Counted from the first letter of the stretch, positions 4,601 through 64,000 are shown. The stretch is 64,000 bases of DNA from Heptranchias perlo (GCF_035084215.1 NC_090366.1:3534001-3598000), one strand, 5' to 3'. Numbers and translations are program-made. Notes: generated from the sequence alone by a model not told the origin.

Positions 4601-5518
4601 ATCGTATAGCGCTGTATCAGCCTTGTCCCACGAAGCCTTCCGTCCACGAAGAATTTAATCATAGTGGGAAGATTTCACATGGTTCTCATTTCCAGCGAAT
4701 TTGTAAACGGTCCAGAAGATTTAGATTTCACTGCAAATGGTCACCAGAAGAAATGATCCCTCCTACCGTGTTATTAGAACACTTTACAATCATTAAATTT
4801 GGGGTGCGTGTTATGCTGTAACAAACCAGGTGAATTCTTAAGGTTTAAATTTGTGATTTTATTTAACTCCGTTTTTATTTGGAATGCACTGATATGGACG
4901 ATGTTAATATAATGGGCCTGTAGGACCATATTCGCGACCCAAGAAGGTAATTGCTGAGTCGAGCTTCATACAATACAAACAGGTGCCACAATTGTCTCCG
5001 CGTGAAAGACAACTGAAACAATGTACATTTATCTATCGCCTTTCACGTTTTCGGGATGTCCCAAGGTGCTGTGCAACTAATGGATTAATTAGAAATTCTT
5101 AATTACCTTGTTGGTTTACGTCAGAGATAACACATGCCGTTTGAGGGTAAAGACTTCGCCAGTTGTGAAATGATCCCAAGCTTCAATTTCAGTTATGTGC
5201 TAGCATAGCAGTGGCCGCACTGTGAATGGCCTCGACGCTCCTGGCCTAAATGGCAGAAAACAGCCAGCGTTCCCATTCCTGATCATTGTCGAGTGAGCCA
5301 TTTCCAGCTGGTAAACGTGCCGATGCCACGGCTGAGTAAGCACAGGATCAGGCACAACCGTGAGCACTTAGCTACGCCCAGGACAAGTTTTTACCACTAC
5401 ATGTTCTGAAAAGGAAGGATGCATTGTGAAGGAACAAGGCCACACAGTTTAGTGGTAAATAGTGAAAGATCCCCCGGGTGCTGACAGTGTGTCACAGGAA
5501 AAAATACAGTGCACTTAC

Positions 5519-5536
5519 TGCGCCACCTAGTGGCCG
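5519..5536 (-). promoter_or_regulatory. Candidate CTCF site
   Basis: Reverse complement CGGCCACTAGGTGGCGCA closely matches the CTCF core consensus. A TGTAGT upstream-motif-like hexamer lies 9 nt before it. Confidence 0.6.
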
Positions 5537-5592
5537 TAGCCAGCAACTACACCTACATTCGAACTCGCTGGAAATAACTATATTAACATGCC

Positions 5593-8578
5593 CATAAGGC
5601 AATAAGACCGTAAGAGATAGGAGCAGGAGTAGGCCATTCGGCCCCTCGAGCCTGCTCCGACATTTAATGAGATAATAGTTGATCAGATTATTACCTCAAC
5701 TCCACTTTCCCGCCCTTTCCCCATATCCTTTGACTCCCTTGCTGATCAAAAATTTGTCTAACTCAGCCTTGAATGTATTCAATGACTCAGCCTCCACAGC
5801 TTTTTGGGGTAAAGAATTCCAAAGATTCACGACTCACTGGGAGAAGAAATTCCACCTCATTTCTGCCTTTTTCTGAGACTATGCCCCTTAGTTTTAGATT
5901 CCCCCATCAGGGGTAACATCCTCTCAGCATCGACCCCAGAGAGTCCTCTCAGAATCTTGTATGTTTCAATAAGGTCTCATCTCATTCTTCTAAACTCCAA
6001 TGAGTATAGACCCAACCTGTTCAATCTTTCCTCATAAGACAACCCTCCATACCCGGAATCAACCTCGTGAACCTTCTCTGAATTGCCTCCAATGCAAATA
6101 TGTCCTTCCTTAAATAAGGGCACCAGAACTGTACGCAGTACTCCGGGTGTGGTCTCACCAGCACTCTGTACAGTTGCAGCATGACTTCCCTGCTTAAATA
6201 TTCAATCCTCCTGGAAATAAAGGCCAATATTCCGTTTGCCTTCCGGATTACCTACTGCACCGGTATGTTGATATTTTGTGTTTCCCAAATCCCCGGGGCC
6301 TGATAATCTACACCCCAGAGTACTAAAGGAAGTGACCCTGGAAATAGTGGATGCATTGGTGATCACCTTCCAAAAATTCTAGATATTCTGGAACTGGTCC
6401 TACAGATTGGAGAGTGGCAAATATAATCCCACTAATTAAAAAAGGAGGAAGGGAAAAAACAGGGAATTGCAGACCAGTTAGCCTATCATCAGTAGTGGGG
6501 AAAATGCTAGAGTCTATTATAAAAGATATGATGACAGAACCTTTGGAAGGCATTAACGGGATTGGACAACGTCGGCATGGGTTTATGAAATGGAAATCAT
6601 GCTTAACAAATCTACTGGAGTTTTTGGAGGATGTAACTAGTAGAATAGACAGGGCAGAACAAGTGGATGTGGTGTATTTGGATTTGCAGAAGGCTTTTGA
6701 TAAGATCCCACAAAAGAGGTTATTGTGCAAAATTAAAGCACATGGGATTGGGTTAAATATACTGGCATGGATTGAGAATTGGTTGACAGAGAGGAAACAG
6801 AGAGTAGGAATAAACGGGTCTTTTTCCGGATGGCAGGCAGTGACTAGTGGGGTACCGCAGGCATCAGTGCTTTGGCCCCAGCTATTCACAATATATATCA
6901 ATGATTTGGATGAGGGAATTAAATGTAACATTTCCAAGTTTGCAGACGACACAAAGCTGGGGTGGAATGTGAGCTGTGAGGAGGATGCAAAGTGGCTCCA
7001 ACGTGATTTAGACAAGTTGGGTGAGTGGGCATAACATGGCAGATGCAGTAAACCGTGCATAAATGTGAGGTTATCCACTTTGCTTGTAAAAACAGAAAGA
7101 CAGATTATTATCTCAATGGTGATGGATTGGGAAAAGGGGAGGTGGAACGAGGCCTGGGAGTCCTTGTACACCAGTCGCTGAAAGCGAGGATTCAGCTGCA
7201 GCAGTTAGGAAGGCGAATGGTGTGTTGGCCTTCATTGCAAGAGGATTTGAGTACAGGAGCAGGGGTGTCTTACTGCAGTTATACAGGGCCTTGGTGAGAC
7301 CACTTCTGGAGTATTGTTTGCAGTTTGGTCTACTTATCATGGAGGGAGTGCAACAAGGTTTACCAGACTGATTTCAGGGATGGCAGGACTGACGTATGAG
7401 GAGAGATTGGGTCGACTAGGCCGATATTCACTAGAGTTTAGAAGAATGAGAGGTGATCCCATCGAAACATATAAAATTCTAACAGGACTAGACAGACTAG
7501 ATGCAGGGAGGATGTTCCCGATGGCTGGGGAGTCCAGAATCAGGGGTCACAGTCTCAGGATACGTGGTATGCCATTTGGAACCGAGATGAGGAGAAATTT
7601 CTTCACTCAGAGGGTGGTGATCCCGTGGAATTCTCTACCACAGAAGGCAGTGGAGGCCAAGTCATTAGATGTATTCAAGAAGGAGATACATATATTTCTT
7701 AATGCTAAGGGGATCAACGGATATGGGGAAAAAGTGGGAACAGGGTACTGAGTTAGACGATCAGCCATGATCATTTTGAATGGCGGAGCAGGCCCGAAGG
7801 GCGGAATGGCCTACTCTTGCTCCTATTTTCGATGTTTCTATGTTTCATGTACGAGGACACCCAGATCCTTCTGTACCGCAGCATTTGGTATTATTTCTCC
7901 ATTTAAATAATATTTAGCTTTTTTATTTTTCTCACAAAGTGGATGACTTCACATTTTCCCACATTATATTCCATCTGCCAAATGTTTGCCCATTCGCTTA
8001 ACCTATCAATATCCCTTTGCAGACACTTTGTGTTCTCATCGCAACTTGCTTTTCCACCTATCTTTGCATCTTCAGCAAAGCTGGCCACAAGACACTCTGC
8101 TCCTTCATCCAAGTCATTGATATATATTATAAATACTTGAGGCCCCAGCACTGATCCCTGCGGCACCCGACTAGTTACAGATTGCCATTTTGAAAATGAC
8201 CCTTTTATCCCGACTCCTTGTTTTCTGTTAGTTAGCCAGTCCTCTATCTATGCCAGTATATTACCCCCAACACCATAAGCTCTTATCTTGTGCAGTAATC
8301 TTTTTTGTGGCACCTTATCGAATGCCATTTGGAAATCCAAATATACTGCATCCATTGGTTCCTCTTTATCCACCCTGTCCGTTACTTCCTCAAAGAACTC
8401 TAATAAATTTGCCAGACATGATTTCCCCTTCATAAAACCATGTTGACTCTCCTTGATTGCATTATGAGTCTCCAAATGTCCTGCTACTACGTCCTTAACA
8501 ATGGATTCTAGCATTTTCACAGTGATAGATGTTAGGCTAACTGATCTACAGTTACCTGCTTTCTGTCTCACTCCCTTC
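5593..8578 (-). mobile_element. 5'-truncated CR1 LINE (minus), interrupted by a nested plus-strand CR1 at 6285-7846
   Basis: Minus RT fragments at 6021-6227, 7903-8166 and 8248-8613 are colinear once 6285-7846 is removed. The block is absent from the paralogous site in copy B (35510-35530). Confidence 0.85.
6285..7846 (+). mobile_element. Nested 5'-truncated CR1 LINE
   Basis: ORFs 6414-7034 (RT: KAFDKIP, GVPQ, FADDTKL) and 7314-7751. Tail gatgtttctatgtttc; tgtttc is present at both junctions. Confidence 0.9.
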
Positions 8579-8699
8579 ACTAACACACAGATTGCAACGG
8601 CAAGAGAGACCATAGTGAGTCTTTCCCTGCACTTCCCCGCCTCTCCAGTTTGTGTTTTCCAACTCTGATTCTAATTAATACGAAGCAGAAATACTCCTT

Positions 8700-8920: not shown

Positions 8921-8922
8921 AG

Positions 8923-9096
8923 GGAGAACATTGTGAGAATGATCCAGACAGTGGCGTCAGGGAACTGATATCAGATTCGTCTCAGCAGAACGAATACATT
9001 AATTACGCCAGTGTGCATTTTTCACATATTCCTCAAGAGCATGCATGTGTACATGGTAAAGGGATGAGTCAATTTGCAGCTATTAAGTACAACTGA
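8923..9096 (+). CDS. Terminal cytoplasmic exon of a plus-strand Siglec-like/ITIM receptor (copy A)
   Basis: Acceptor tttgtgttgcag| then GEHCENDPDSGVRELISDSSQQNEYINYASVHFSHIPQEHACVHGKGMSQFAAIKYN*. INYASV fits the ITIM consensus and SQFAAIKYN resembles the SEYAAIKFK tail of the minus genes. AATAAA at 9447. Confidence 0.65.
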   Translation, partial: GEHCENDPDSGVRELISDSSQQNEYINYASVHFSHIPQEHACVHGKGMSQFAAIKYN

Positions 9097-12640: not shown

Positions 12641-14812
12641 TCACTTAAATTTAATTGCGGTGTATTCACTGGATTCCTCAGTGTGGGGATATCTTTCAAG
12701 CTTGCGAAAGTTTCAAACATTGGCCACTGCATACAAAACCTCTTCACACCAATGTTTGTACACAGACCAATGATTCAATACAGGCCTTGGCTCTATAACA
12801 TAAAGTACTGCCTTAGACATGGAGTTATTGTTCCGGGTGAGAGTGCGCGTTCAGTACCGGAATAATCCGCTTCATCCCACCTCTGGCACGAATCTATTGT
12901 TCGTACTGAGTTAGGGGAACATTTTGAGCTTCACAACATACAATCATACGAAAAGACGGGAAGGAAAAGACCGACTAGTCCATCGAGCATGAACCAAACT
13001 GTCATTTCCCAACAATGTATCAGGACACCAGCCTTCCCTCCCACCATGACGAACTGTCCAGGAAGAGGCAAAAACATAGTAAAAAGCATTAGGCCACTTC
13101 ATCAAAAAATATATGTTAAATTCCTCTCTGATCACTAAAAGGAGTTAGAGGTTGATAACAGTGCCGATGAAGTAAATTAAACAACATCCAACCTATGGTT
13201 TGAATGCCAGGAGGGAACACATCCAGTTGCTTTATGAACTTTTGCAGATTCCTCTCCAACTTCACCAGGACACCGACTGCAATCAGAATGATAACTGCGG
13301 CGGTTGTTCTTATTCGCATGGCTATTATCAATGAAAATGTAACTAAAATATTCAAAAGAAAAAGCTTGCTGCTCACTATTCTTCCAAGATTACAACACGG
13401 TATGAGGATAGTATTTATCAGCTTGTATGGGAATCTGTAAACATTACAGCCCAGCGTTACACTTCTTAACTAAACAATGGAGGGAGCTTCTGCAAGTTGC
13501 CGAGAATTCAATTATTTCTGTTCAATTCAAAACCTAACACACATCTCGGTATTATTCAATGTACCAGCAGCCTCCCTGTAGCTTGTGACGTAGGTGAGGA
13601 GTATCACGATATATTTCCATTCTAGGCTTAAGTTAAATGGCACTGAGAAGATGGAACATAAACGACAAAAGGAACAAATGAAGAAAAAAATCCTGAAATA
13701 GAAAGATTGACATGAGATCTGGAAGCGTGTTCTTCTATAATATTCCGGGCATTAGTTTTATTCAGTCGGAATTAATAGTCACCTTCATCGATGTCTTTTA
13801 TCCGTAAGAAATATTGTTTTTTTGTGAAGTCGCTGGTGAACTCACCTCTCCCTCTATAGATCAAGTTTATATTGTCTAGGCCTCTGGGATCAGGGACAAT
13901 AAAGACCCCTCGGGTTCCACGATCAGAACCCATCTTCAACCACATACCCCGTGGGTTGCGGCCATAGACGGGATAATCACATTTGCACTGGATCTCTGCA
14001 CATGAACCGCTCACTTCCGTCACAAAGCATGGCATCGCCACAGACCATGGTGACCTATGGACAACTGATGATAAATAGAAATTTAGCACCCGTTGAAATC
14101 CCCAATATCGTTCCATTTCAAACATTCCAGAAAAGTCCAGCTAAATGCTTTTAAATTACTCTTTAATGCTGAAATAGCCACTTCGTGAATTTACAAATCA
14201 CTAACTAACCATATAACACGTCTGTAATTAATTACTTTGATAGTTTTCCACAAGATGGAAAACGTCGCCAGCAGAAATAATTAGAACGAATATTTTAATT
14301 CCAGGGATGAAGGGCTTTAGTTATATGGATAGATTGGAGAAGCTGGCGTTGTTCTCCTTATAACAGAGAAGGTTGTGAGGTGATTTGATAGAGGTTTTGA
14401 AAATCATGAGCGGCATAAATAGAGTCGATAGAGAGAAACTATTCGCATTGGCAGAAGGGTCAAGAAGCAGAGGTCATAGATTTAATGTGATTGGCAAAAG
14501 AACCAAAGGTGACATGAGGAAAAGCTTTTTTACACAGCAAGTGGTTAGGATCTGGAATGCGCTGCCAGAGAGGATGGTGGAGGCAGATTTAATTATGGCC
14601 TTCAAAGAGGAACTGGATAAATACTTGAAAGGAAAAACAATGCAGGGCTACGGGGAAAGGGCGAGGAAGTGAGACCAGCTGGATTGCTCTTGCATAGAGT
14701 CGGCACAGAGTTGACAGGCCGAATGGACTCCTTCCGCGCAGTAACTTTTCTTTTATTCTATGATTTAACCTTCGCTAAATAATAAGAGAGAAACGAACTT
14801 CATATTCTTCAT
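12641..14812 (-). pseudogene. Compact Siglec-like pseudogene A2: signal 14770-14812, V-set 13693-14064, TM 13252-13342, tail 12641-12792
   Basis: MKNMKFVSLLLFSE|VVHRSPWSVAMP..SGSCAEIQC..GMWLK..YRGRGEFTSD..LRIKDIDEGDY*FRL; in-frame TAA at 13772-13774. V and TM donors read GA instead of GT. Tail EEVLYAVANV*..SSEYTAIKFK* contains stops. Confidence 0.85.
14295..14765 (+). mobile_element. CR1 3' fragment inserted just inside intron 1 of A2 (paralog 49375-49840)
   Basis: ORF 14385-14672 includes RSRGHRF..FFTQQVVRIWNALP. Present in both duplicate copies and absent from intron 1 of A1. Confidence 0.85.
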
Positions 14813-16398: not shown

Positions 16399-17829
16399 AA
16401 AAACTCAACTGGTTCACTCATGTCATTGAGCCAAGGGAACATGCTGTCCTTAGCCAGTCTGCGCCTATGTGTGTCTCCTGTCCCACATCAACGGGGTTGA
16501 CACTTAACTGCCCTCTGAAGTGGCCTAGCAAGCCATTCAACCGTATCAAACTCAGGACAGCTCGAGGTGAGAAATAAATTGGCCCGTTTCCAGCGACCTG
16601 ACCTTCTCGATATTTTGTTTTTGAAATGCTAAGCCTGAATCCGGAGCAGAAAGGCTGACAGTAGAGATTCGCCAAACCCAAAGATCCACCCTTTATACTT
16701 CCTTCCCTTCTGCATGATGCCGGTGAAATCACAATAAATAAACTGATGGAAGTTTAAACCCGAAAAATCGTTTGTTACAATGGGCTGGGAGAGGGTGCAA
16801 ACAAACCCAGCCCCGGATAGAGACAGTGAACGCTATTCGATAGGGCTTTGTAATATGTTAGCAAAGATAGGTCTTAAATGAAAACAACGGTCGAATTTTA
16901 AAAAAATATTTATTTTACTAGAGCAGATAAAAAAAGTTTCAATTCTCATTGACGATTAAAGCCCATTTTCCGACGCTTTTCACAAGTGTATTTGGAAAGG
17001 AAACACGTGTTCGGATTGCAAATCAAATGATCTCACAAAGATTTAAAAATGTTAGCATGATGTCCATTCCCACAGCACTTCCTGGAATGTGAAGTTCCTG
17101 ATCTAGCTCAGAAAACCAATTGTGTGAAGATGCTAACGAGCTCCCTCTCTCCGAACGCTGTAAATCCTGCTTCATTTCACTCAAATTGAATTGCTCCGTA
17201 TTCACTGGACTCCTCATTCCGCAGATATTCTTCATGTTTTCGAACGTTTGATACTTTGACAGCTGCGTACAGCACATTTTCTCTTTGAGCTAGTTGGTTG
17301 GAGGCAGCCCCTCGAACATCAGTGTTTGCATACTGCCCTTGGCTCTGTAACAGAAAGTGAGAATTAGATATGGAACTACTGCCGGTTGGGAGTGCGCTTC
17401 CTGTGCCAGAATAACTCGCCTTATTCCCTACCTGGTGCATTCTAATGTTCCTACTCAGTGTGAAAAGCATTTGAAGTTCTAATACAATAAGTAACGTGTG
17501 TTTACATAATACCTCATTACAGCGTCTTGTAACCAACGGATTACATTTAAAGTACATCAGCTAATTTGCCCACAATAAAAGGAAATGAGTAAAATGACCT
17601 GGCGATCCATTTTGGTGGTGTTTTGAACAATTTTAACCATGACAGGTGGAGAAATCGCTACTCTTCTTCCAATAGTGCATTGAGATTTCTAACTTCCAAC
17701 TGAACTACTGGAACAGGCAGCCAAGGCCCTGGATTAAGCAGTCATTTGAAAGACGGCACCTCCCTTAATGCAGCACTTGCTCTGTACTACATCCCGGTCA
17801 CACTCTAGATGGAAGGCTCAAAATGTGAC

Positions 17830-19160: not shown

Positions 19161-21179
19161 GTCCCCCGGGTGTCACAATGTCATGAGGGAGGGCAGTGCA
19201 AGATTTTTTTCCTTAAGAGATATGAGAAAACGATTTTCTTCGACTGACTTTGATTTCAATAAAATCCCCAATAATGTAAACGTCGATGACCGATTTATCA
19301 GGTCATGACCAGCGCATCAGTTCCTGTTAGTAGGCTGAGGTGGCCATTCAACCCTTTAAAAATTCCGTCAAACTATTTTCTAAAGCACCCGTTAAACCGT
19401 TGCGTTGTGTGTTGAATGTCATTCCCACTGGTTACAAACAGAGCAAATATCAGGTAGGTAACTCCAGCGAATGCTGGATAATTTCCATATGCTCACTTAC
19501 CTCATTGTTAAACGGGTGCTGCACTGCAGCGTAAATCACGGAATCGCTGTTTGTTGGGGGGACAGTAACGGTGTCTCTTGTCTTCTTGCTGATTCAAAAC
19601 AATACAAACAATCAAAATCTCATAACTGCTGATATTTAAAGTTAATAAATCTTCTGGTGCCCTATGTTGAACTACGTCATCGAGGATTTGTGTATATAAC
19701 GTTTCCTGATTAGCATAGACATGATTTCATTCCAGTTTCTGTTCTATCCTTACGCTTCCATATTTCTGAATGAGGATTTATCTCTATCCCGTGAAGCTGG
19801 ATAATGAATTGGCGCAGTCTGCACTTGGAGAAAAGATTAGCCTGGACAGTGTGTTATCACACTTGGAGATAGATTGCTAACAACTGTTCAAAAACCGGAC
19901 ACAGGAGTTGCATACATTGAGGTAACACCTTGTTAAAATAGGAAATAGAGGAGTTTTATCAAGTGTGTTCCCACTTTATTAAGTAGCGGGGTTGTTTTAA
20001 TTGATTATTAACACTATTTGAACTGCAGGTATGAGCTTCACAAATTAACACCTTATTAAGTAGCAGAGAAGTGGTTAAAGAGGCGGGATTTGCAGACATT
20101 GGCTTAACATATTGCCGAAAGAGCAGTCGGAAGAGTTTCCTGCGATATATTAACACATTTCTAAAATTACAGACGGGACTTTTATGTTGTGTGTTACCAC
20201 ATTCGTTACTGGTATTGAACAGTTGAATTCCAACCGATTAGATTTTTGAAAAGAGGAATAAATTAACTTTCTTCTGATTCAGTTTGAAAACCTGGGGTCG
20301 AATTTCTGATATTTCTTATATTTTTTGTGAAGTTAAGCTAGTTTGTGATTTTCTGAGTTTTTTTATGGTAAATTGGAGGCAACAACCACCTTCGCTCACA
20401 GAAGAATGTTGGAGCTCATTGAGATCCCGTTGTTGCCAGTGTGTGGTTCTAATCAGGCATGGGTATGAGGGAAAAGCCTGATATTTTTTAAACCACAAAC
20501 ATCTTTTGTGATTAAGTAACACGTCTTCGAAGAAGCTGCTTTTTTTAGAATCGCCGAGCTGTTTAAATTTAGATGCTCCCAATTACTTTTTTGAAAGTAT
20601 TTAACAGCCAATCTTTCAGCTGACAGCAATGCTGACAGTAGCCTTGGAAGGAAATTAGTGAAACTAAATAGGTTCATCAGGAAAAGAGACACAGGAAAAT
20701 AACTCATTTCTCCTATAATATTTTCTCTACTCCATTAGTAATAACTACCATCATACTATTATTGGACAGATTAACATTTGTATAAATCCCTCCATGGTTT
20801 CACCCCACCCGGCACATGTAACAGCCTCTCGCCCCACAATAAACCCCGCGCATCGAACTCTGTGATGTTCTGACTCTCGCCTCTTATTTCCCTCTTCCCT
20901 CCACCCACAATTGGCGGACGTGCCTTCAGCTAGTGAGCCCACAGAGTCTGGAATTACCTGCTCAGAGCCTTTCACAACTCCATCTCACTCTTCTCCAAGG
21001 GGGCCCTCCTTAAAACCCATCTCCTTGACCAAGATTTTACTCACCGCTCATAATATCAGATTCTTTGAATCCGTTTCCGATTAGTTTTTCCTTGTAGCTC
21101 TTTTAAACCCTTGGGACGGGTTAGTACAAGGTGCTTTAGAAATTTAACTTGGTTTTTTTGGCACTTGAGTCCAAAATTA

Positions 21180-22595: not shown

Positions 22596-23819
22596 CTCAG
22601 TTGCAGAAATCCTGATGCCATGGACCCCTTTCAGATCTGTGATTGGCACATGACTTCATGTGAACTGTGCACCACACATACCTCAGTGCCATAACCGCGA
22701 TCAGAAACAGGATGATCAAAGTGGCCGCTGCTGCAACTGGGATGACAATTTTCCAAGGAAAAGTTCCTGAAATATTCAAAAAGACCTTGTTGTTCATTAT
22801 TGCTCTACGATTACAACATGGTATTAGGATCACTTTAATCCGCCTGAATTGGCAAGTTCCCTCTATGTTCACATCTCAAAAGCAAGAATCAAAGATTTTA
22901 TATCTTTACTGAAACCTCAGAACTCTGACCCGGCGATTAAAGGACGGACGATTTGAAAATGGTCCCAAATCTAATCTCCCTAAAAATCGTCAATGTGCTT
23001 CATTAATATATTGGGAAATATTTGCAGAAAATGCACAGGGCAGCATTTAAACTGATTACTTTTTCCCCGAACTAACACTGGATTTCCCACATCGTTTTAC
23101 CCTTGTTGTGAGTGTTCTGTAAATTTAAAATAAATATTTATGGATTGAATTCCTCTCTGTTCCGTTCATATCAAATTATGGAAAGAGAAATGTACACGGA
23201 CAGTCCATCGAATACACCTCTGCCTCGATAAAACAGTCGGATTCTTTTAATGCAACTGGGACACTTGTTAAAATGCAACATCGGGTCACGAAGCAACAAA
23301 CGAACCCCCCTCACACGGTGCCTTATTTACTTTAGCAGGATGATATCTGCCTTGAATGGATGTTATTGAGGACTGTATAAAGCACAACAAAGAATTCAGT
23401 CTCCAATCGCGAATGTGTGAAAATATCCATCTCACAAACATGGGTCGATTCGCTTGAATTCAGTCTCTCATCTTCAATTATCCCAGGTATTCGGGTATTC
23501 AGACTCCATTTTCAGAATTACCCAAATTAACAGTCTTCTCAGAACATCTTCAGGAAAGCAATCCCAGGAGCAGTCTGAAATAGCTGTAAGAGCTGCTTAG
23601 TTCTACTGTATGAACAAGATAGAACTGAGCAAGTATGAATTCAATGATGCATCCAGCCCGCGACTGTTGTAGTGCGAGACAACCTGACTTCAGAAAGCGT
23701 CGAGTTAATTCTGAAGATTCTGTTTTGTTCAAAATCGCATGGCACTTATACTGTTTTATATTAATCCCTTCCGATTTGCGCAAAACAAAGCAACAATAAA
23801 TACATCCGGTAAATCAGTG

Positions 23820-24662: not shown

Positions 24663-27539
24663 TTATTATTCTGATCGCAACTTTTAGTGAGTTAGTGGTC
24701 AGTGGCGGACAATACCTATAGACTACTTAAATTATCCAGTGGATTCTGTCCTTAATTGCAGATGGATTTGGTATTCAACTGCCGAATGGAGCTGATATTT
24801 GCTGACACTAACACCGTTCACTTAGTGACGGGTCAGTGATGGAAAAATCCAACGACAGTAATGAAATCCCAGGAAATGTCACGATTTACCTGTTAAATGG
24901 AGTTGATATTTGCCGACACTAACGCCGTGCTGGTTTGCTGCAACACATGAGATCTGGTTTCCAGTTCTAGTTGGGTGAATCAATATCAGAGAGCTCTGCA
25001 CCAAGTGACCATTCACTGCCCAGGAGATAAATTAATCTGAACTGTTCCTGGTGATGTTTCTTCCATTGAGACCCCATGTGATGTTTGCCGGGCGGTTGGC
25101 TCTGACACCGCAGGTACAATCAATCCCACTCTCAGAAATGATGCAGTTCGGGCCTGATACTATTGAAGGTTTATCTAAAAAAAATAAGAAAAGAGTTCAC
25201 CTTCAGATAGCTTTCATCAAGCAGTTTGCAGTGTCTTAGTAGAACCGACTTGGACTTTTAGACTAACCAGAGAGGTTACTGCACAGCCGTGTTTAATTGG
25301 AGCCATTAAATGTTACATTCGTTTCATGGATCATCAGATTTTGCTTTTTGCTCAATTCCAGCAATCAATAAGTTCACATCGAACCAATGAGAGGTCATTT
25401 AATCCATTCATCTTCATGCTGTGGGCGATCACCCAGTTACAATATTGTAAAAATACCCGACTAACTCACCTCAACTGTCAGTATATATAAAGTTATACAT
25501 ATAAAGTTATACATTTCTACCTTTGTGACTGACTAACGTGTTCTTCCACTTCAGGGCCGCTGGGATCAATCCCCCGCACATTAATTCTGCAGATCCACAT
25601 CTCACATATTCATTAACTTGGTTTCAACCAGTCTGAGATACATTTTACCTTGTTTTATGCAATCGGGTCTCTGTTATTTAACAATGTTTTTTTACACGCT
25701 AAATGTGATCAAATTATCCTTTTACTAGCCTTTCTGTGACCATTACTGACATCGGCTCGTGAGAGAATTGTGTGAACATGTGGGAAATAACACCCATGCG
25801 TAGTCACTGTGGAACGGATCATTCATGTCCCTTTGTGCATTCAATAGGTGGAACCTCCAATAATACTCCATGGGTCTGGGAAAAATGTTAAGCAAAGTGA
25901 CTGACAAGAATTAGCTGGTAGACAGTTCGATTAATTGATGATCCGGTCGAGCTCTCACTACACTGAGAATAACAACAACTTTTGAACCTGTTTATCAACA
26001 AGTTAGTTGAATCAAGCATAGAGCGGGTATTTACATTTAACGGCCAGTGCAAGAGTTTCTTGAACAGTAGCTTCGACACCTTCAACTATAACTTTACATC
26101 CCAGAGTTTTCCCATGAAGGTCCGAGGATGGGACGAAGGTGAAAATGGATGAAACCCTCCGGGAATAATCCAAACCGTTGACATTTTGTTCGGAAGTTTT
26201 AGTCTCTGTCAGAAAAGGAAAGTAACCTTGATCATAAGTCCACTTCAGCTCAAGGTTGGCGGATGGGCAACTGTGGGTGATCGAGCAGGTCAGTTGCGCT
26301 GGTTGTCCAACAACCAATTCCCCAGAGACCGATACATTTAGTTTTTCTGTACGGGGAGAAGGAAATTCGCGTTACAGTGGATTTCAATTTTGAAAATGGC
26401 CAATAGTGTGAAAGGCGATTCAATCCAAAGACTGAGAAAATATCACCATGAAAATGAATTCTTTTCTTTTCCGCCTGCTTTCAGCTGCAGGCAAAGATGC
26501 CTAAAGTCAATTACTCCTTAATATTACTGAACTAATCAGATCATATATGCACTCAGCCGCTTTATCACTCGAATTATTCACGTTATTGGCCAGTGAATTA
26601 ATTTCCACACATCCACTGCGTTGCTGACAACTCAAAATGAGCTCTTCAAATATCAGCAAGCATTAAACCCGTTCATGCCTCATTGGGTAAATTAATTCTT
26701 TGATGTGATACTGAACGATTAGGCCAGCCCGGTCCCACATTCTATCCCAAGTCTGTGGTTGGGATAGAATCTGGTATCTTCTTTGCCCGAACTGCTTCAA
26801 AGAAACGATGGTTGAAGACAGTCCTGACGGGGAACCGAGAGCCTGATAAAATCTTACGGGAGGAAACAACAAACAGGGGCCTGTCCTGAAAAAGTCATGC
26901 AGTCTTCAGCGGAAATATCATGCTGGTGGTGTGCGATGGAATCAATAAATAAATCAGAATTGGAAATCCGGTCAATTGTCGCATAGGCATTTGGTTATTA
27001 AATATTGAAAGACAAATCTCAGTCCCAAACCTGCGGGGACTCGGGGAGATCTCTGTAAAACTTAATCTGTCGGTGATGAGGAAGCGAAAATTGTGAACTT
27101 ATATTGTTTAATATTGGGAGAAAGGGTCACATTTAGTCGTTTTATCTTACTGGGAGTTGCCCTGTGGATTTTCACCACCCATCGGTCATTAGGTATTTTG
27201 AGAAATTGCTTTGTTGAAAATTGTACTTGGACGATTGGAAATTGGTCCTTATTGGCCCTGTCTTTATTATGATAATGGACTTAAAATTATCACTTGGGAT
27301 AATAGCAGAAGACGTTTCTGTCTAATTTCTTGCCACGCCGTTTTAGTGAGCTTTTCTCCATCTATTCTACATTTCAGCTAAACCTAAGCATTCAATGGCT
27401 CCAAGTGCATGGTGTAATTTCGCAGCCCGTGAGCTCTTTAACGAATTTGTTTGAGTCGGGTTACTGGGATAAATAACCCGCAGTCGTTATTCATGCAATC
27501 TTTATGACCAGTGCGGTGTGACAATACATGGGAAAACGT

Positions 27540-27820: not shown

Positions 27821-30729
27821 TTTTTTATTCCTTTATGATATTGAGACCTGTAGGTGATGTTACCAGAGAAATCCCTCCCGTGTTTAAACCATGTCCACCT
27901 ACCCTTCCTTCAGAATTGCAAACGTTGACTTAGTTTTGCGCTTCAATTATGGATTGAATTTTGACCCGCCGTTCTGTACGGTTCAATACAACATCTAACG
28001 TTGCACTTACTAACCTAACAACGCGGAGCGCTTCTGTAAGTTTTTAAGAATACCTATGCCATTTTTCAACTCAAGTCAAAACATAATCCTCACCTGGGTA
28101 TTATTCAATGGACCAGCCCGGCAGCTATAGCCAGTGACGAAGGCCAAAAGTATCAAGATATTTTTCCATTCTAGGCTTAAATTAAATGGCACTGAGGAGA
28201 CGGAGTATAAACTAAAAAAGGAACAAATGAAAAAAATCTTACCTAAAATATAAAGACTGACGTGAGATGCGGATGTGTTTGTTCTATACTATTCTGGGAT
28301 TTGCTGATCTTCGGTCTAAATAATAGTCACCTTCATCGCTCTTCCTGATATCTTTTATCCGTAAGAAACATTGTTTCCTTGCAAAGTTGCCGTTCAACTC
28401 AGTTCGTCCTCGATAATTAAAGTTTATTTTGTTTAAATCTCGGGGATCATGGACAATAAAGACCCCCTGGCTACGAGGATCAGAAACCCCCTTTAACCAC
28501 ATACCCCATGGACTGTGGCCAAATGTACACAAGATCTCTGCACATGAACATTTCACTGCTGACACAAACCACGGCATCTTCACAGACCATCGTGAACAAA
28601 GGACAACTGATGAAAAATAGAAATTAAACACCCATTGAAATCCCTAATAACATACCAATTGCAACATCCCATGACATTCCAGCTAAGTACTGTTAAAAAT
28701 AACCTTTAAACATTCACGAACATATTCATTAGTATGTCTATTAAAGCGTGTGAAATTATCACTAAAACTCTTTAAATTCCATCAAAATTTCGATTACAGT
28801 CGAACAAAACAGAAATATTCAAAAATATCCTACTTAAATACAGAATAAAAGTCCGAATACAATGTACCTTAAATACCCACTTCTGAATTTACAAATCACT
28901 AAATAACCATACACGATTTGAATCACTAATTACCTTGTTATTTTGCAATACAAGTTATTAAAAAGAATATTTTACCTTCGCTAAATATCAGGATGAAAAT
29001 AACCATAATGCTCTTCATGACTATCACGGTGTTTCACTGTGTCAAAATGAACAAATAAAAACGACCTCAGATCGAAGATTAATTACGTTTCTTGACTCCG
29101 CTCGCCGGTAATATACTGGATTTCAATATCAGTATGTCCGGAGGTCAGCAGTTCGGCACGAACCAATCCAGGCCAACCGTGATAGCTCACACAGCTTGCA
29201 ACATTCCTCCACTCTGGGACAGTTCGACGATGACAATGTGACTTCAGTGTGTGGCCCGCAGTTCCAGGACGTGATAACTCCAAACTACTGCTAAATTCAG
29301 ATAAATGCCTCCACCTCATTATCTGCACAGTTACAGGGCAGGCGATGGCATTTTAAATTGCAAACTCTAAAATAATCTTCTACACCAAGTGTTAGACGCC
29401 CACACTCACAACTCCCACATATTTAGCTAATTTTCAGCACTTGAGCTCTGAATGTTTGAAATGTGCAGCTGTGGTTAGTTCTGTAGCCGCTGTCTCCAGA
29501 CATGTGGGTTTATCATCTTCAGTAGTTTGGGGCGTAACACGCATCTGAAATATCAAAGGCACAAAAGTATTTGTCAGTAAACAGTTTCAGACGAGCAAAC
29601 CGCCGTTTTTCGAAGTGACCTCAAGTATTTATATTCACAATCCAGAGATATGAAATCTGCTGAAATTAACTCATTTATATCCCAGTTGCTTCAATAACCC
29701 GTTTATGATTTTTCTGATGCTGGATCTGGGACGCATGGCTGGATCTTATAGATTCGTGTGTCAGTGCTACAGGAAACAAGATATTTTTATCTACAGAATT
29801 AAATTCCTTCAAATTGATCAGTGAGAGCAAATCTTAGATCCAATTAAACACCGCCCATCCTCAACTGAGCGCTTTTTCAGATTCGGTTAAGAGGAAGAAT
29901 AAGTTCAGACCAGTTGGACGGTAAGAGGCCCGTATCACCGCTGCCTTGGACACGGCGTTAGTGATCAATAAATATCTTAAATTATACGTTCCAGTAAAGC
30001 GTCGGATGAGCCTCGTAGAGTGTGCTCAACTCACTTATTCCATTTTCTGTTTCACAATTCCAAACCTGAAATCCGTTCCACTTTCATGAGGAAATCGCTC
30101 ATTTTCTGCCGCACTCTCAAGTGACCAATTTTTGCACGTTCTAGTCATACTTATTGGACTTCTCGACACGGGAAACATAATTCACTCTCCGCGATATCCC
30201 CACGCCCACAAGGAGAAGGGTCACGGCAGCCAGGCGAGATAAATCTGGACTCTTGGACATCCCGTGAACCCAAAGGCTTGTAGCAAACCAGAAAATGCTG
30301 GAAAGACATTACAGGTCAGTCGCTATCGGTAGGGGAGAAGAAATTCGTAAATTTTGGGTTAATAGTTCATCAGAATTGAAAGCAAGCATTTTAGTAAAGT
30401 GAAAGAAAGGAAGTCTTGACGAGAACGATGTCTCACATTACAGAATGGCGACTAATCGTTTACAAATCGGTTACTTGAAATCTATTAGGAAATATAAAAT
30501 ATCATCGGGGAGTGAAAGGAAATACAATATACGAACGTAGGAATGTGTAAGTATTTCAGCGGATGAAAATTGTCTGCGAGGAACAATCAATGTGGAGCTC
30601 TGAATTTAACTATTTGAGCCTTCTAGGATGTACACGCACTGGACCGAACATGCAATGGCAGTTTCCCTGAAATATCTACGGTTTCAAGAACTCTGAAAAC
30701 GGAGCGCTAAATTCTCGGGAGTGACCGTG

Positions 30730-47721: not shown

Positions 47722-49888
47722 TCACTTAAATTTAATTGCGGGGTATTCACTGGATTCCTCAGTCTGGGAATATCTTTCAAGCTTGCGAAAGTTTCTATCA
47801 TTGGCCACTGCATAAAACCTCCTCACACCAATATTTGTATACAGGCCAATGAATATATATAGGGCATTGGCTCTATAACATAAAGTACTGCCTTAGACAT
47901 GGAGTCATTGTTCCGGGTGAGAGTGCGCTTTCAGTGCCGGAATAATCCGCATCATCCCACCTCTGGCACTAATCGACTGTTCCTAATGAGTTCGGGGAAC
48001 ATTTTGAGCTTTAGAACATGCACACGAACTAAAAGACGGGAAGCAAAAGACCGACTGGTCCATTGACCATCACCCAAACTGTCATGACCCATACAATGCA
48101 TCACGACAGCAGCCTTCCCTCCCTCCACCACGAACTGTCCAGGAAGAGGCAAAAAAATAGATAAAAAGCATTAGGCCACTTCATTAAAAAAAATGTTAAA
48201 TTCCTCTCTGATCACTAAAAGGAGTTCCAGGAGATAACAGTGCCGATTAGGTACATTAACCAACATCCCACCTGTGGTTTTTATGCCAAGTGGGAAGACA
48301 TCCAGTTGCTTTATGAACTTTTCCAGATTCCTCTCCAACTTCACCAAGACAACGACTGCAATCAGAATGATAACTGCGGCGGCTGTTCTTATTCGCATGG
48401 CTATTATCAATGAAAATGTACCTAACATATTCAAAAGAATAAGTTTGGAGATCATTATTCCTCTGAGATTACAACACGGTATGAGGATAGCATTTATCAG
48501 CATGTATGGGAATCTGTAAACATTACAGCCCAGCGTTGCACTTATTAAATAAACAATGGAGGGAGCTTCTGCAAATTGCTGAGAATTCAATTATTTCTGT
48601 TCAAGTCAAAACCGAACACACACCTCGGTATTATTCAATGTACCTGCAGCCTCCCTGTAGCTTGTGACTTAGGCTAGGAGTATCAAGATATCTTTCCATT
48701 CTAGGCTTAAGTTGAATGGCACTGAGGAGATGGAATATGAACTCCAAAAGGAACAAACAAAAAAATACCTAAAATAGAAAGATTGACATGAGATCTGGAA
48801 GCGTGTTGTTTTATAATATAGCGGGCATTGGTTTTCTTCAGTCGGAATTAATAGTCACCTTCATCGATGTCTTTTATCCGTAAGAAATAATGTTTTTTGT
48901 TAAAGTCGCTGGTGAATTCAGCTCGCCCTCTATAGATCAAGTTTATATTGTCTGGGCCTCTGGGATCCTGGACAATAAAGACCCCTCGGTTTCCAGGAAC
49001 AGAACCCCTCTTTAACCACATACCCCGTGGGTTGCGGCCATCGATGGGATAATCACATTTGCACGGGATCTCTGCACATGAACCGCTCACTGCCGTCACA
49101 AAGCATGGCATCGCCACAGACCATGGTGACCTTTGGACAACTGATGATAAATAGAAATTAAGCATCCATTGAAATCCCCAATAACATTCCAATTCAAACA
49201 TTCCGGAAAAGTCCAGCTAAATGCTTTGAAATTACTCTTTAATGCTGAAATAGCCACTTCGTGAATTGACAAATCACTAACTAACCATATACCACGTCTG
49301 TAATAAATTACTTCGATATTTTTCCACAAGATGGAAAACGTCGCCAGCAGAAATAATTATAACGAATATTTTAATTCCAGGGATGAAGGGCTTTAGTTAC
49401 GTGGATAGACTGGAGAAGCTGGCGTTGTTCTCCTTGGAACAGAGAAGGTTGTGAGGTGATTTGATAGAGTTTTTGAAAATCATGAAGGGCCTAAATAGAG
49501 TAGATAGCGAGAAACTATTCCCATTGGCAGAAGGGTCAAGAACCAGAGGTCATAGATTTAAGGTGATTGGCAAAAGAACCAAAGGTGACATGAGGAAAAA
49601 AATTTTTACACAGCGAGTGGTTAGGATCTGGAATGCGCTGCCAGAGAGGATGGTGGAGGCAGATTTAATTATGGCCTTCAAAGAGGAACTGGATAAGTAC
49701 TTGAAAGGAAAAACAATGCAGGGCTACGGGGATAGGGCGAGGAAGTGGGACTAGCTGTATTGCTCTTGCATGGAGTCGGCACGGAGTTGGTGGGCCGAAT
49801 GGCCTCCTTCCGCGCAGTCACCTTTCTATTATTCAATGATTTTACCTTCGATAAATAATAAGAGAGAAACGAACTTCATATTCTTCAT
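47722..49888 (-). pseudogene. Compact Siglec-like pseudogene B2: signal 49846-49888, V-set 48769-49140, TM 48331-48421, tail 47722-47872
   Basis: Paralog of A2 with the same DY*FRL stop (48848-48850) and the same GA TM donor. Frameshifted tail ends SSEYPAIKFK*. Confidence 0.85.
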
Positions 49889-52262: not shown

Positions 52263-52430
52263 TCATTTAAATTTAATTGCGGCGTATTCACTGGACTCCG
52301 CATTCCGGAGATATTTTTCATGTTTGCGAACGTTTGATACTTTGACAGCTGCGTACAGCACATTTTCTCTTTCTGCTGATTGTTTGGCGGCAGCCCCTCT
52401 AACATCAGTGTTTGCATACTGGCCTTGGCT
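52263..52430 (-). CDS. Siglec-like gene B1 last exon (YxN, ITIM, ITIM-like)
   Basis: ttctgttacag|SQGQYANTDVRGAAAKQSAERENVLYAAVKVSNVRKHEKYLRNAESSEYAAIKFK*. Confidence 0.85.
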   Translation of the reverse strand, partial: SQGQYANTDVRGAAAKQSAERENVLYAAVKVSNVRKHEKYLRNAESSEYAAIKFK

Positions 52431-54711: not shown

Positions 54712-54799
54712 CTCAGTATTAAATGGGTGCTGCACCACAGCGTCAGTCACTGAATCGCTGTTTGTTGGTGGGACATTAACGGTGTCTCTTGTCTTCTTC
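54712..54799 (-). CDS. B1 first cytoplasmic exon
   Basis: ttttgaatcag|(R)KKTRDTVNVPPTNSDSVTDAVVQHPFNTE|gtaagt; 88 nt, phase 2 to 0, as in A1. Confidence 0.8.
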
Positions 54800-57700: not shown

Positions 57701-57804
57701 TGTTCACTACAATAGTTACTCAGAGGCAGAAATCCTGATGCCATGGGCCCCTTTCAGATCTGTGATTAGCACAAGAGTTCATGTAAACTATGCACCACAC
57801 ATAC

Positions 57805-57889
57805 CTCAGTGCCATCACCGCGATCAGAAACAGGATGATCAAAGTGGCGGCTGCTGCAACTGGGATGACAATTTTCCAGGGAAAAGTTC
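57805..57889 (-). CDS. B1 transmembrane exon
   Basis: atatttcag|GTFPWKIVIPVAAAATLIILFLIAVMAL(R)|gtatgt; 85 nt; same peptide as A1 up to the split junction codon. Confidence 0.85.
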
Positions 57890-60024: not shown

Positions 60025-60309
60025 CTGCTGAATGGAATTGATATTTGGCAACACTAATGCCGTGCGTGTTTGCTGCAACATATGAGATCTGGTTTCTCGT
60101 TCTAGTTGGGTGAGTCAGTGTCAGGGAGCTCTGCACCAGGTGACCATTCACTGCCCAGGAGATAACTTCATCTGAACTGTTCCTGGTGATGTTTCTTCCA
60201 TTGAGACCCCATGTGATGTTTGCCGGGGGGTTGGCTCTGACACTGCAGGTACAATCAATCCCACTCTCAGAAATGGTGCAGCTCGGACCTGAGACTACTG
60301 AAGGTTGAT
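60025..60309 (-). CDS. B1 membrane-proximal Ig exon (Siglec-5/-10/MAG-type CxxxxxxxxCxC pattern)
   Basis: QPSVVSGPSCTISESGIDCTCSVRANPPANITW..NSS..GHLVQSSLTL..ISYVAANTHG; 285 nt, phase 1-1. Confidence 0.85.
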
Positions 60310-61214
60310 CTAAAAAAGTAAAAGAAGAGTTCAACTTCAGCAAGTATTCTTCAAGCAGTTTGCAGTGTCTAAGTAGAACCGATTTGAACCTTTAGACTAA
60401 CCAGAGAGGTTACTGCACAGCCGTGTTTAATTGGAGCCATACAATAATTCTAGCAATCAATAACTCAGGTAAAAGTTCACATCGAACCAATAACCGGCAT
60501 TTGAATCATTTATCTTCATGCGGGAGATTACCCGGTTAGAATACTGTTAACAATACCCGGCTAACTCACCTCAACTGTCAGTTCTGGTAAAACTGTTTGT
60601 ATTTAATCTTATAAACTTCTACCTTTGTGATTGAATAACGTGTTCTTCCACTTCAGGGCCGCTGGGATCAGTCCCCCGCACATTAATTCCAGCGTTTCAC
60701 ATCTCACATATTCATTAATTTGGTTTCAACCAGTCTGAGATACATTTTACCTGGTTTTGAGCATTGGGGTCTCTGGTGTTTAACGATTTTTTTTACCCGC
60801 GAAATGTGGTCAAATTCTCGTTCTTTTACTGGCTTTTCTGTGACTATTACTGACATCGGCTATTGAGAGAATTGTGTGAACACGGGGGAAATAATACCCA
60901 CGCGTAGTCACTGTGGAACGGATCATTGATGTCCCTTTATATATTTAATAGGTTGCATAAAAATCTCTGTAGAGCTGTTTGCGGTGCCCAAGTTATCTCC
61001 AGCCATGCGCCAATGTTACATTTATGTTACGTTTGATCCTCAACGGAATCGGGTGTGAGGAAGATTAGCTTTCCAAATATCAGTGGGATAAATAGGAAAT
61101 GTTTAACACCACTCCCAGTCTAAGAGTTTTGAAGATGATTGTTTATAACAGCACGCTTAACTTCAGTAAAGAAACATAATAAAGAGAATGAAGGTAGTTT
61201 CACACCGCACTTAC

Positions 61215-61478
61215 ATTGTACAGAAATCTGTGTGGAGCTGTTTGCGTTGCCCACGATATTTTCAGCCACGCACCAATATTGTCCGTCATCTTTAGAACTA
61301 ATATTGTGAAATATCTGCCTCAGTTCACCGGTGGAAGACATGCTGATCTCCAAACCATCTCTCACCCATCTTAAACTGACCGGTAGTTTGCCCTGGGTCG
61401 TGCAGTACAGTAATACTGAACTTCCTTCCACTGCTACTATCGAGGAATTGACGGTTGGTTTCCGTGGGATAGCTGGTA
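61215..61478 (-). CDS. B1 third Ig exon (C2/I-set)
   Basis: PRKPTV..EGSSVLLYC..SLRWVRDG..DDGQYWCVAEN..ISVQ|gtaagt; acceptor at 61478 or 61472 (both phase 1). Confidence 0.85.
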
Positions 61479-61581: not shown

Positions 61582-62114
61582 CTCACCCTATTATAGAAAG
61601 GATATTATTAAACTAGAAAGAGTGCAGAAAAGATTTACTAGGATGCTACCGGGACTTGATGGTTTGACTTACAGGGAGAGGTTAGACAGACTGAGACTTT
61701 ATTCCCTGGAGAGTAGGAGGTTAAGGGGTGATCTTATAGAAGTCTATAAAATAATGAGGGGCATAGATAAGGTCGATAGTCAAAATCTTTTCCCAAAGGT
61801 AGGGGAGTCTATAACGAGGGGGCACAGATTTAAGGTGAGAGGGGAGAGATACAAAAGGATTCAGAGGGGCAATTTTTTCACACAAAGGGTGGTGAGTGTC
61901 TGGAACGAGCTGCCAGAGGCAGTAGTAGAGGCGGGTACAATTTTGTCTTTTAAAAAGCATTTGGACAGTTACATGGGGAAGATGGGTATCGAGGGATATG
62001 GGCCAAGTGCAGGCAATTGGGACTTGCTTAGTGGTATAAACTGGGCGACATGGACATGTTGGGCCGAAGGGCCTGTTTCCATGTTGTAACTTCTATGATT
62101 CTATGATTCTATGA
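61582..62114 (+). mobile_element. Young short CR1 3' insertion in a B1 intron
   Basis: Near-identical to 34903-35443; (ATTCTATG)n tail. Confidence 0.95.
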
Positions 62115-62384: not shown

Positions 62385-62550
62385 TGATGCATTTAAGGGG
62401 AAGCTAGAGAAACACAAGAGGGAAAAAAGAATAGAAGGTCACGTTGATGGGGTTGGATGTAGAGAAGTGGGAGAAGGCTCGTCTGTAGCATAAACAACAG
62501 CATGAACCAGTTGGGCCGAACGGCCTGTTTCTGTGCTGCACATTCTTTGC
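62385..62550 (+). mobile_element. Old CR1 3' tail fragment
   Basis: gatgcatttaaggggaagctagag..ccagttgggccgaacggcctgtttctgtgctg; same family as 4235-4600. Confidence 0.65.
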
Positions 62551-62818
62551 AATGTTATTCATTTACTCTGTGGCTAAAACGATATCTGACATTGGGATCC
62601 TTTGGAATAATATTGTACATAAACCACACCCGTGGAACGATCAATATTACTCCAATGGTTTGGGAAAAATGTTAAGTAAAGTGACTGACAAGAATTAGCT
62701 GATAGACAGTTCGATTAATTGATTATCCAGTCGAGCTCTCACTACACTGGGCAGAACAACAACTTTAGAACCTGTTTATCAACAAGTTAGTTGAAACAAG
62801 CATAGAGCGGGTATTTAC

Positions 62819-63130
62819 ATTTAACGGCCAGTGTAAGAGTTTCTTGAACAGTAGCTTCGACACCTTCAACGATAACTTTACATCCCAGCGTTTTCCCATG
62901 AATGTCCGATGATGGGACGAAGGTGAAAATGGATGAAACCCTCCGGTAACCATCGAAACCGTTGACATTTTGTTCGGAAGTTTTAGTCTCTGCCAGAAAT
63001 GGAAAGTAACCTTGATCATAAGTCCACTTCAGCTCAAGGTTGGCGGATGGGCAATTGTGGGTGATCGAGCAGGTCAGTTGCGCTGGTTGTCCAGCGATCA
63101 ATTCCACAGAGACTGATACACTTGGTTTTT
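62819..63130 (-). CDS. B1 second Ig exon (Siglec C2-set domain 2)
   Basis: ctcctcacag|KPSVSVSVELIAGQPAQLTCSITHNCP..LKW..SIFTFVPSSDIHGKTLGCKV..LAVK|gtaaat; 312 nt. Confidence 0.9.
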
Positions 63131-64000
63131 CTGTGAGGAGAGAAGGAAATTCGCGTTACAGTGGATTTCAATTTGAAAATGGCCAATGGTGTGCAAGTCG
63201 ATTCAACCCAAAGTCTGGGAAAATATCACCTTACAAATCGAATTCTGTTCTTTTCCGCCTGCTCTCAGCTGCAGGGAAAGATGCCTAAAGTCAATAGCTC
63301 CTTACAATTACTGAACTAATCGGATCACATATGCACTCAGCCGCTTTATCACATGAATTATTCACGTTATTGGCCAGTGAATTAATTTCCACTCACCCAC
63401 TGCGTTGCTGACAATTCAAAATGAGCTATTCAAATATCAGCAAGCATTAAACCCACTCATGAATCATTCGGTAAATTAATTGTTTGATGTGATACTGAAC
63501 CATTCGGCCAGCCCGGAGCCACATTCTATCCAAAGTCTGTGTTAGGGATCGAATTTGGCATATTGTTTGCCCGAATTGCTTCAACGAAACGATGGTTGAA
63601 GATAGTCCTGACTGGGAACCGAGAACCTGATGCAATCTTACGGGAGGAAACAACAAACCGGCGCTTGTCCTGAAAAAGTCATGTCGTCTTCAGCAGAAAT
63701 ATCATGCTGGTGGTGTGCGATGGAATCAATAAATAAATCAGAATTGGAAATCCGATCAATTGTCGCATAGGCATCAGGTTATTAAATATTGAAAGACAAA
63801 TCTCAGTACCAGCCCTGGGGGGACTCGGGAAGGTCTCTGTGGAATTTAATCTGGGGTGGATGAGGAAGCGAAAATTGTGAACTTATATTGTTTAATAATG
63901 GGAGAAAGGCACAAAATTATTAGATATATCTTATTGGTTGTTGCCCTGTAGGTCATTGAGTATTTTGGCAAAATTATTTGTTGAAAATTGTTCTTGTGAG

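Follow-up and report, generated by a model that had tools for sequence, protein, structure and literature searches.

A 64-kb stretch of the genome of the shark Heptranchias perlo (GCF_035084215.1 NC_090366.1:3534001-3598000, 64,000 nucleotides, hereafter the window) is a section, twice duplicated and for the most part decayed, of a larger Siglec-like receptor cluster of the shark. It holds two tandem copies, A and B, of a cassette with three units: a minus-strand receptor gene with immunoglobulin (Ig) domains V, D2, D3 and D4 in its full form (A1, B1), a pseudogene reduced to leader, V, transmembrane (TM) and tail exons (A2, B2), and a plus-strand tail exon with an immunoreceptor tyrosine-based inhibitory motif (ITIM) (A3, B3). 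A1 is a pseudogene, with a frameshifted V exon, a deleted D3 exon and a stop in D4. B1 we read as a transcribed gene under relaxed constraint, decaying or shifting in function, and not as a well-conserved receptor. Taken as a whole, the explanation by tandem cassettes of Siglec-family genes with a dead A1 and a relaxed B1 is in our judgement probable, and it stands on direct observation of the gene anatomy, of lesions and homology, and of a single splice junction.

Tandem duplication of a three-unit cassette

Self-comparison of the window, which contains no N, gave 115 off-diagonal blastn matches at E<=1e-10. Six colinear blocks pair copy A (~8866-27229) with copy B (~36916-63996) at 83-89% identity (Table 1). 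A weak match at 78% between 5339-5492 and 32709-32863 agrees with the cassette boundary placed by a first-pass annotation made from the sequence alone, and gives copy A a period of ~27.4 kb. Copy B is longer than copy A because of insertions of long interspersed nuclear elements (LINEs; Table 1). The non-coding divergence between the copies is ~9-13% (Jukes-Cantor distance 0.090-0.135 across six non-coding blocks), and their synonymous divergence (dS) is 0.142. All three units were found in both copies, and all Ig exons of the window lie on the minus strand. The two colinear cassettes and their content of a receptor, a one-V pseudogene and an ITIM exon had been described in the first-pass annotation and are borne out by these alignments. 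Its four-Ig-type receptor gene in each copy fails for copy A, where A1 has V, D2 and D4 exons only, and B1 shows three Ig exons within the window.

The tandem duplication is real. That A and B are divergent haplotypes or an assembly artefact instead is extremely improbable, and nothing was found in its favour; here the reads were examined over copy B only, the DNA run (X1) is probably from the same sample as the assembly, and read depth was unusable as a test. Both copies lie within one gap-free stretch, and their divergence comes with many private indels and LINE insertions. Furthermore, copy B has minor-allele variants of its own in X1, at ~1/3 of local depth in 7 places in 5.5 kb, an allelic variation about a hundred-fold below the A/B difference, and a spliced RNA contig described below agrees with B1 and not with A1.

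Within the cassette, older events can be told from younger ones. A2 and B2 have in common a TAA inside YxFR and the replacement of the E-strand cysteine of the V domain by tyrosine, which indicates that unit 2 was dead before the cassette was duplicated; they also share a degraded tail exon. Their V exons differ by 7 synonymous and 20 non-synonymous changes, with a ratio of non-synonymous to synonymous rates (omega) of 0.80. Five colinear blocks at 67-80% in turn link A2 to A1, and the stretches with D2-D4 and cytoplasmic exon 1 have been removed from A2 intron to intron. Lesions common to both copies, lesions private to one copy and this older duplication of unit 1 and unit 2 support the birth-and-death evolution proposed in the first-pass annotation. 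The layers are datable, with 67-80% identity between units 1 and 2, 87-91% between cassettes A and B, and 98% between LINE copies.

Kinship with the Siglec family

Comparison of the window exons with known proteins supports their membership in the Siglec family. Searched against solved structures, the V exon of B2 matched sialoadhesin (E = 5e-6), MAG (2.2e-5), Siglec-7 (0.012) and Siglec-8 (0.26), with the best non-Siglec at 0.27. D2 matched MAG domain 2 (1.3e-6), Siglec-5 (7.6e-5) and Siglec-8 (1.6e-4), and D4 matched MAG domain 5 (4.2e-7), then axonin-1 (8.3e-5). D3 matched generic I-set domains first (titin 1.4e-27) and MAG at 1.9e-23. A profile built from 13 shark relatives had MAG as its best match (3.9e-75), with colinear alignment across V-D2-D3 and a further stretch across MAG domains 4-5, followed by Siglec-8 (2e-41), CD22 (2.9e-32), Siglec-5 (9.4e-30), CD33 (8.9e-29), Siglec-10 (2.4e-21) and the sialoadhesin V domain (5.7e-18). 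Matches to titin and contactin are interspersed among these and span the I-set region only. In this homology search the domains match Siglecs ahead of any non-Siglec spanning V-D2, the first of which is nectin-1 (6.8e-15). Over V-D2-D3, MAG scored 155 bits, Siglec-8 145, CD22 115, Siglec-5 107 and CD33 103.

Motifs point in the same direction. The arginine of MAG's YYFR aligns to the Yyfr of the profile, and the cysteines of V and D2, including the extra cysteine of D2 (LTCSITH(N/S)CP in both copies), align with those of MAG and sialoadhesin; in the V domain we take these positions to belong to strands B, E and F. Hallmark motifs had been reported in the first-pass annotation as spread across the paralogues. 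GSCAEIPC in the V exon of B2, LTCSITHNCP in D2 of B1 and GPSC...GIDCTCSVRANPP in D4 of B1 are indeed present, but the YxFR arginine occurs only in V exons in which x is a stop (A2 and B2). Among the relatives, this arginine is kept in P0005, P0002, P0029 and P0016 and not in P0007, P0022, P0018 and P0024.

Could these exons come from another family of the immunoglobulin superfamily, such as CEACAM-, nectin- or FcR-like proteins or generic I-set adhesion proteins, with convergent Siglec motifs? Pfam recognises only generic Ig families in the single exons of the window (I-set for D3), most of them below curated cut-offs. D3 alone is closer to titin and contactin than to MAG, and D2 also matches an IgG Fc hybrid, which scored higher than the Siglecs (9e-9, a sum of two domains), and the poliovirus receptor (3e-4). 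We nevertheless regard a non-Siglec origin as very unlikely, since four domains match MAG in order, every top profile match spanning V-D2 is a Siglec, with MAG many orders of magnitude ahead of nectin-1, and Pfam Ig_CD22 recognises the V domain of the Mustelus relative P0005 above its threshold (33.3 bits, cut-off 27).

Within the family, MAG (Siglec-4) is the closest known structure. The domain-by-domain architecture matches MAG in the same order, MAG is the best or near-best match for each exon, and the alignments to MAG take in the cysteine pattern of V, the additional cysteine in D2 and the C...CxC...NP with which the membrane-proximal domain starts. However, the window genes have at most four Ig domains and MAG has five; they exist in several copies, change fast and are in part dead, whereas MAG is a single conserved gene; and their tail carries a YxN and as many as three ITIM-type motifs. 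Given the low identity, the window genes are not a MAG orthologue. Teleost MAG does bear an ITIM, according to PMC7226832.

The CD33-related Siglecs of mammals (such as Siglec-5, -8 and -10) offer a second comparison. Clusters of these genes evolve by rapid gain and loss, and they resemble the window in their tandem inhibitory genes, V plus C2 domains, ITIM and ITIM-like tails, pseudogenes and rapid turnover; Siglec-8 is also near MAG over V-D2-D3. The tail of the window genes is of the inhibitory type I form, with an uncharged TM helix followed in A1 by SVIYAAV, QYANT, VLYAAV and SEYGAI; B1 is alike except that the first tyrosine is aspartate. The motifs are laid out as a separate membrane-proximal ITIM exon and then a last exon with YxN, ITIM and ITIM-like motif. 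The tail of Siglec-5 is simple, and the extra ITIM exon and the YxN set the window genes apart from it, so the tail is not simply of the Siglec-5-like layout given in the first-pass annotation. The assignment to a CD33-related or MAG-like cluster made there stands as far as Siglec kinship goes, on structure matches, profile and the names of relatives; CD33-related membership is one candidate placement, with MAG the best match and Siglec-8 close. No non-Siglec marker gene lies in the 64-kb window.

The nearest relatives are themselves from cartilaginous fishes. A phmmer search of 1.84 billion representatives with the V exon of B2 returned 50 proteins at E<=1e-3, 10 of them at E<=1e-10. Ten of the 50 were checked by name, and all are cartilaginous-fish RefSeq models (nine shark, one ray) named as Siglec-8/-13/-14, MAG-like, sialoadhesin-like or Schwann-cell-myelin-protein-like; several lie on one Heptranchias perlo contig. 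These models have an equal exon-by-exon architecture and equal tails, and differ from the window copies in that the latter are mostly pseudogenes. The H. perlo model P0060 is 85-90% identical to A1 and B1 for D2, D3, D4 and the last exon, up to 81% for cytoplasmic exon 1 and 64% for the TM exon. The protein collection contained no model nearer than P0060 to A1 or B1 and no annotated B1 model, and the best non-self match of P0060 is 60% identical.

Quick trees with SH-aLRT (Shimodaira-Hasegawa-like approximate likelihood-ratio test) support were built for D2 (23 rows) and D4 (33 rows). In the D2 tree A1 and B1 form a sister pair (81) that P0060 then joins (94), and the branch of P0060 measures 0.02, that of either window copy 0.06. 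The remaining sequences of the two trees mostly cluster by species or order, as expected under lineage-specific expansion. With regard to published work, the available part of PMC7226832 states that fish regularly have Siglec-1, CD22, MAG and Siglec-15 and are without CD33-related Siglecs, and contains neither the word 'shark' nor 'cartilaginous'. The available part of a whale-shark genome paper (PMC8455134) names Siglecs among Ig gene families only. No paper describing shark Siglec clusters was found in the literature searched.

State of the receptor genes A1 and B1

Exons were mapped by tblastn with shark relatives, and acceptor, donor and phase were read for every exon. The lesions of A1 fall in its ectodomain. 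Its V exon still has the B-strand CxxxxC (CAEILC), the E-strand cysteine (KQCFLRI) and a DYY without the F-strand cysteine, and after the indel it reads YYLDRR in place of YxFR. No D3 exon was found in A1: in the self-blastn comparison the D3-bearing segment 60953-62632 of copy B has no counterpart in A, which explains why A1 has only three Ig exons. All three ITIM-type motifs in the A1 tail are intact.

In B1 the six exons within the window are all open, with correct AG/GT sites and phase 1-1 Ig exons; the V and leader exons are predicted and must lie beyond base 64000, outside the window, where colinearity with A1 would put the V exon ~1.1-1.5 kb past the end and the leader ~0.4 kb further on. 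Evidence of transcription comes from the read run X5, which carries the label 'RNA?' by a tool's guess and has its sample in common with the DNA runs. One 184-nt X5 contig agrees with B1 throughout (0 mismatches) and connects 57889 with 60025 on the minus strand with GT..AG borders, skipping exactly the predicted D4-TM intron. The DNA run X1, with coverage in all 30 bins, lacks this joint. Over the D4 portion of the contig, 15 positions distinguish A1 from B1. A second D4-like X5 contig (60133-60260, depth 126) has 4 differences from B1, none of them those of A1, which rules out A1 as its source. A third, closer paralogue outside the window, ~97% identical, is therefore expressed, and more strongly than B1.

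Although transcribed, B1 does not look like a well-kept receptor. It has lost the F-strand cysteine of D4 and the tyrosine of the first ITIM (now aspartate), both of which are kept in A1 and P0060. With P0060 as reference, the 41 amino-acid differences between A1 and B1 at 301 sites comprise 18 derived in B1, 19 derived in the dead A1 and 4 assigned to neither. Omega between A1 and B1, from small counts made per exon and then summed, is ~0.76 for D2+D4, near the 0.80 of the A2/B2 pseudo-V exons.

A competing account, in which B1 is a fully functional inhibitory receptor whose ectodomain changes fast through ligand- or pathogen-driven diversification and for which two of three ITIM-type motifs suffice, seems to us unlikely, if a serious alternative. 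It draws on the open reading of the six exons with their correct phases and splice sites, the spliced D4-TM junction, the last exon with its YxN, ITIM and ITIM-like motif, and an omega of ~0.29 for TM plus tail. The lost cysteine and tyrosine, the pace of replacement equal to that of a pseudogene and the ectodomain omega speak against it, and the V exon of B1 is not in view.

Several points weigh against our own account, in which B1 is a transcribed gene under relaxed constraint. Omega is 0.48 overall as well as ~0.29 in TM plus tail, and 0 of 59 non-synonymous sites changed in the TM exon, which indicates that some constraint acted during a part of their past. X5 is labelled as RNA by a guess, and transcription of B1 is seen at a single junction in a single contig at depth 14.5. 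With V and leader beyond the window, the overall integrity of B1 is not visible. P0060 may be an unsound functional reference, as the model has only 28 V residues. The D4 tree groups A1 with P0060 and P0061 (89) and leaves B1 in an open polytomy, so that A1 and B1 are not sisters there and the outgroup assumption of the rate test is insecure for D4. As a separate observation, the P0060 model begins at an internal methionine of the V exon, which hints at a damaged or mis-modelled V.

The history of the locus may be pictured as follows. An ancestral cassette of ~27 kb would have held a receptor gene with leader, V, C2-type D2, I-set D3, C2-type D4, an uncharged TM and a tail with ITIM, YxN, ITIM and ITIM-like motif. 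It would also have held an older paralogue, which two deletions from intron to intron had cut down to leader, V, TM and tail and which a stop in YxFR had killed, and, in inverted orientation, a lone tail exon belonging to a second subfamily. This cassette was duplicated in tandem. A1 has since died through the V frameshift, the D3 deletion and the D4 stop. B1 has kept six open exons, and its D4-TM junction appears spliced in a probable RNA run, but it has lost the D4 F-strand cysteine and one ITIM tyrosine and has changed as fast as A1.

As to function, the V-domain arginine of Siglecs binds sialylated ligands, tyrosine-phosphorylated ITIM and ITIM-like motifs recruit SHP-1/2, and YxN is a possible Grb2 site. 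By analogy, an intact member of the family would be a sialoglycan-binding inhibitory receptor with phosphorylated ITIMs recruiting SHP-type phosphatases. All three V exons of the window (A1, A2, B2) are broken, and of such a receptor the tail half alone is intact here, with three ITIM-type motifs in A1 and two in B1.

The window gives a nucleotide-level view of a shark multi-copy Siglec-like locus in which tandem duplication, internal deletion, the insertion of LINEs and decay into pseudogenes have all been at work, as they are known to be among the CD33-related Siglecs of mammals. As an example of turnover in a gene family it is clear, if ordinary. Most of the locus is a gene graveyard, and automatic gene models already include the family, so the value of the locus lies in comparative immunology and not in a new kind of system. 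A bolder proposal, which we put forward only tentatively, is that cartilaginous fishes have their own large, fast-turnover inhibitory Siglec cluster with MAG-like ectodomains and multi-ITIM tails, a functional counterpart, ancestral or convergent, of the mammalian CD33-related cluster, in which B1, its V exon just past the end of the window, would still be alive and would owe the loss of its cysteine and ITIM to a change of function and not to decay. If true, it would overturn the teleost-derived view of only four conserved fish Siglecs.

Tail exons, relics and mobile elements

Unit 3 consists in each copy of a lone last exon preceded by a good acceptor. Over 72 residues the A3 exon shares 50% identity with the C-terminal end of a MAG-like protein of Heterodontus that is 718 aa long (E 1.5e-14). 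No plus-strand Ig or TM partner exon for A3 or B3 was found by tblastn with 50 relatives at E<=5 or with P0065 alone at E<=1, and unit 3 is accordingly read as an orphan exon. A protein-atlas match of the A3 tail, to an unnamed 55-aa cluster at 0.89, was set aside as below the trust level of the tool.

Several smaller features accompany the receptor units. The TM-like exons of A2 and B2 have two arginines in the helix (IIAMRIRTAAAVIILI), which may reflect noise from mutation or a one-time anchor of the activating type. Both copies also have a tail-like open reading frame (ORF) a short way upstream of cytoplasmic exon 1 of unit 1, on the minus strand and in another frame (19650-19726 in A, 54860-54937 in B); in A it reads NHVYANQETLYTQILDD, with a YxN plus an ITIM, and copy B has phenylalanine for tyrosine there. 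No matching relative was found for this ORF, which may be an old exon relic or chance. The relic of a second D3-type exon in copy B (Table 1) suggests either that an ancestor had two exons of the D3 type or that a rearrangement made use of exon homology.

The LINE ORFs carry the endonuclease and reverse-transcriptase domains of a non-LTR (long terminal repeat) retrotransposon. The family appears young, with two copies 98% identical and a third, inverted copy at 94-95%. Very high read depth over the LINE 3' end in all runs indicates a high-copy family, possibly still active.

Table 1. Features of the window and colinear blocks of the two cassettes
Feature	Position	Strand	Description
Block 1 (A / B)	8866-11549 / 36916-39539		84.6% identity, self-blastn
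Block 2 (A / B)	11548-11999 / 40655-41103		88.5% identity, self-blastn
Block 3 (A / B)	11996-12169 / 42926-43112		83.4% identity, self-blastn
Block 4 (A / B)	12167-18727 / 47269-53802		89.3% identity, self-blastn
Block 5 (A / B)	18722-25849 / 53894-60953		87.0% identity, self-blastn
Block 6 (A / B)	25848-27229 / 62632-63996		89.2% identity, self-blastn
A1 leader exon	28976..29018	-	MKSIMVIFILIFSE + 1 nt, open, GT donor
A1 V exon	28243..28606	-	broken: length 364 nt, not divisible by 3; six codons deleted in C-C' region; frameshift; stop
A1 D2 exon	26035..26346	-	LTCSITHSCP, open, AG/GT, phase 1-1
A1 D4 exon	24890..25174	-	in-frame TAA against GAA in B1; F-strand Cys kept (ISCVAAN)
A1 TM exon	22682..22766	-	open, uncharged helix, peptide identical to B1
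A1 cytoplasmic exon 1	19501..19588	-	open, intact ITIM SVIYAAV
A1 last exon	17177..17344	-	open: QYANT (YxN), VLYAAV (ITIM), SEYGAI (ITIM-like), stop
A2 leader exon	14770..14812	-	MKNMKFVSLLLFSE
A2 V exon	13693..14064	-	TAA at 13772-13774 inside Y*FR, E-strand Cys to Tyr, donor GT to GA
A2 TM-like and tail exons	12644..13340	-	TM-like exon ~13340-13250 (two Arg in helix); degraded tail exon 12745-12644 (stop, frameshift)
A3 orphan last exon	8923..9096	+	INYASV (ITIM), SQFAAI (ITIM-like, Tyr to Phe), stop
B1 D2 exon	62819..63130	-	LTCSITHNCP, open, AG/GT, phase 1-1
B1 D3 exon	61215..61478	-	I-set, open, copy B only
Relic of second D3-type exon	60953..61017	-	last 65 nt, 80% to 61216-61280, exactly at A/B breakpoint
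B1 D4 exon	60025..60309	-	GPSC...CTCSVRANPP, open; F-strand Cys to Tyr (ISYVAAN)
B1 TM exon	57805..57889	-	open; spliced to 60025 in 184-nt X5 contig
B1 cytoplasmic exon 1	54712..54799	-	open; ITIM tyrosine lost, SVTDAVV (TAC to GAC)
B1 last exon	52263..52430	-	open: QYANT, VLYAAV, SEYAAI, stop
B2 leader exon	49846..49888	-	MKNMKFVSLLLFIE
B2 V exon	48769..49140	-	GSCAEIPC, TAA at 48848-48850 inside Y*FR (as A2), E-strand Cys to Tyr
B2 TM-like and tail exons	47725..48431	-	TM-like exon 48431-48342; degraded tail exon 47847-47725 (12-codon gap, frameshift)
B3 orphan last exon	36975..37115	+	INYATV, then truncated by deletion or frameshift
LINE copy	32856..35444	+	851-aa endonuclease/reverse-transcriptase ORF unbroken, at A/B cassette boundary; 98% to 44717-47272
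LINE insertion	41100-42959	-	private to copy B
LINE insertion	43278-47272	+	private to copy B
5'-truncated LINE 3' end	61583..62114	+	private to copy B, adjoins D3 exon

Long minisatellite-like arrays sit at the 5' end of cassette A (31031-32194) and directly upstream of the B3 exon (35517-36969); one has a unit of ~100 bp and the other is Cys/Thr/Ser-rich on translation.

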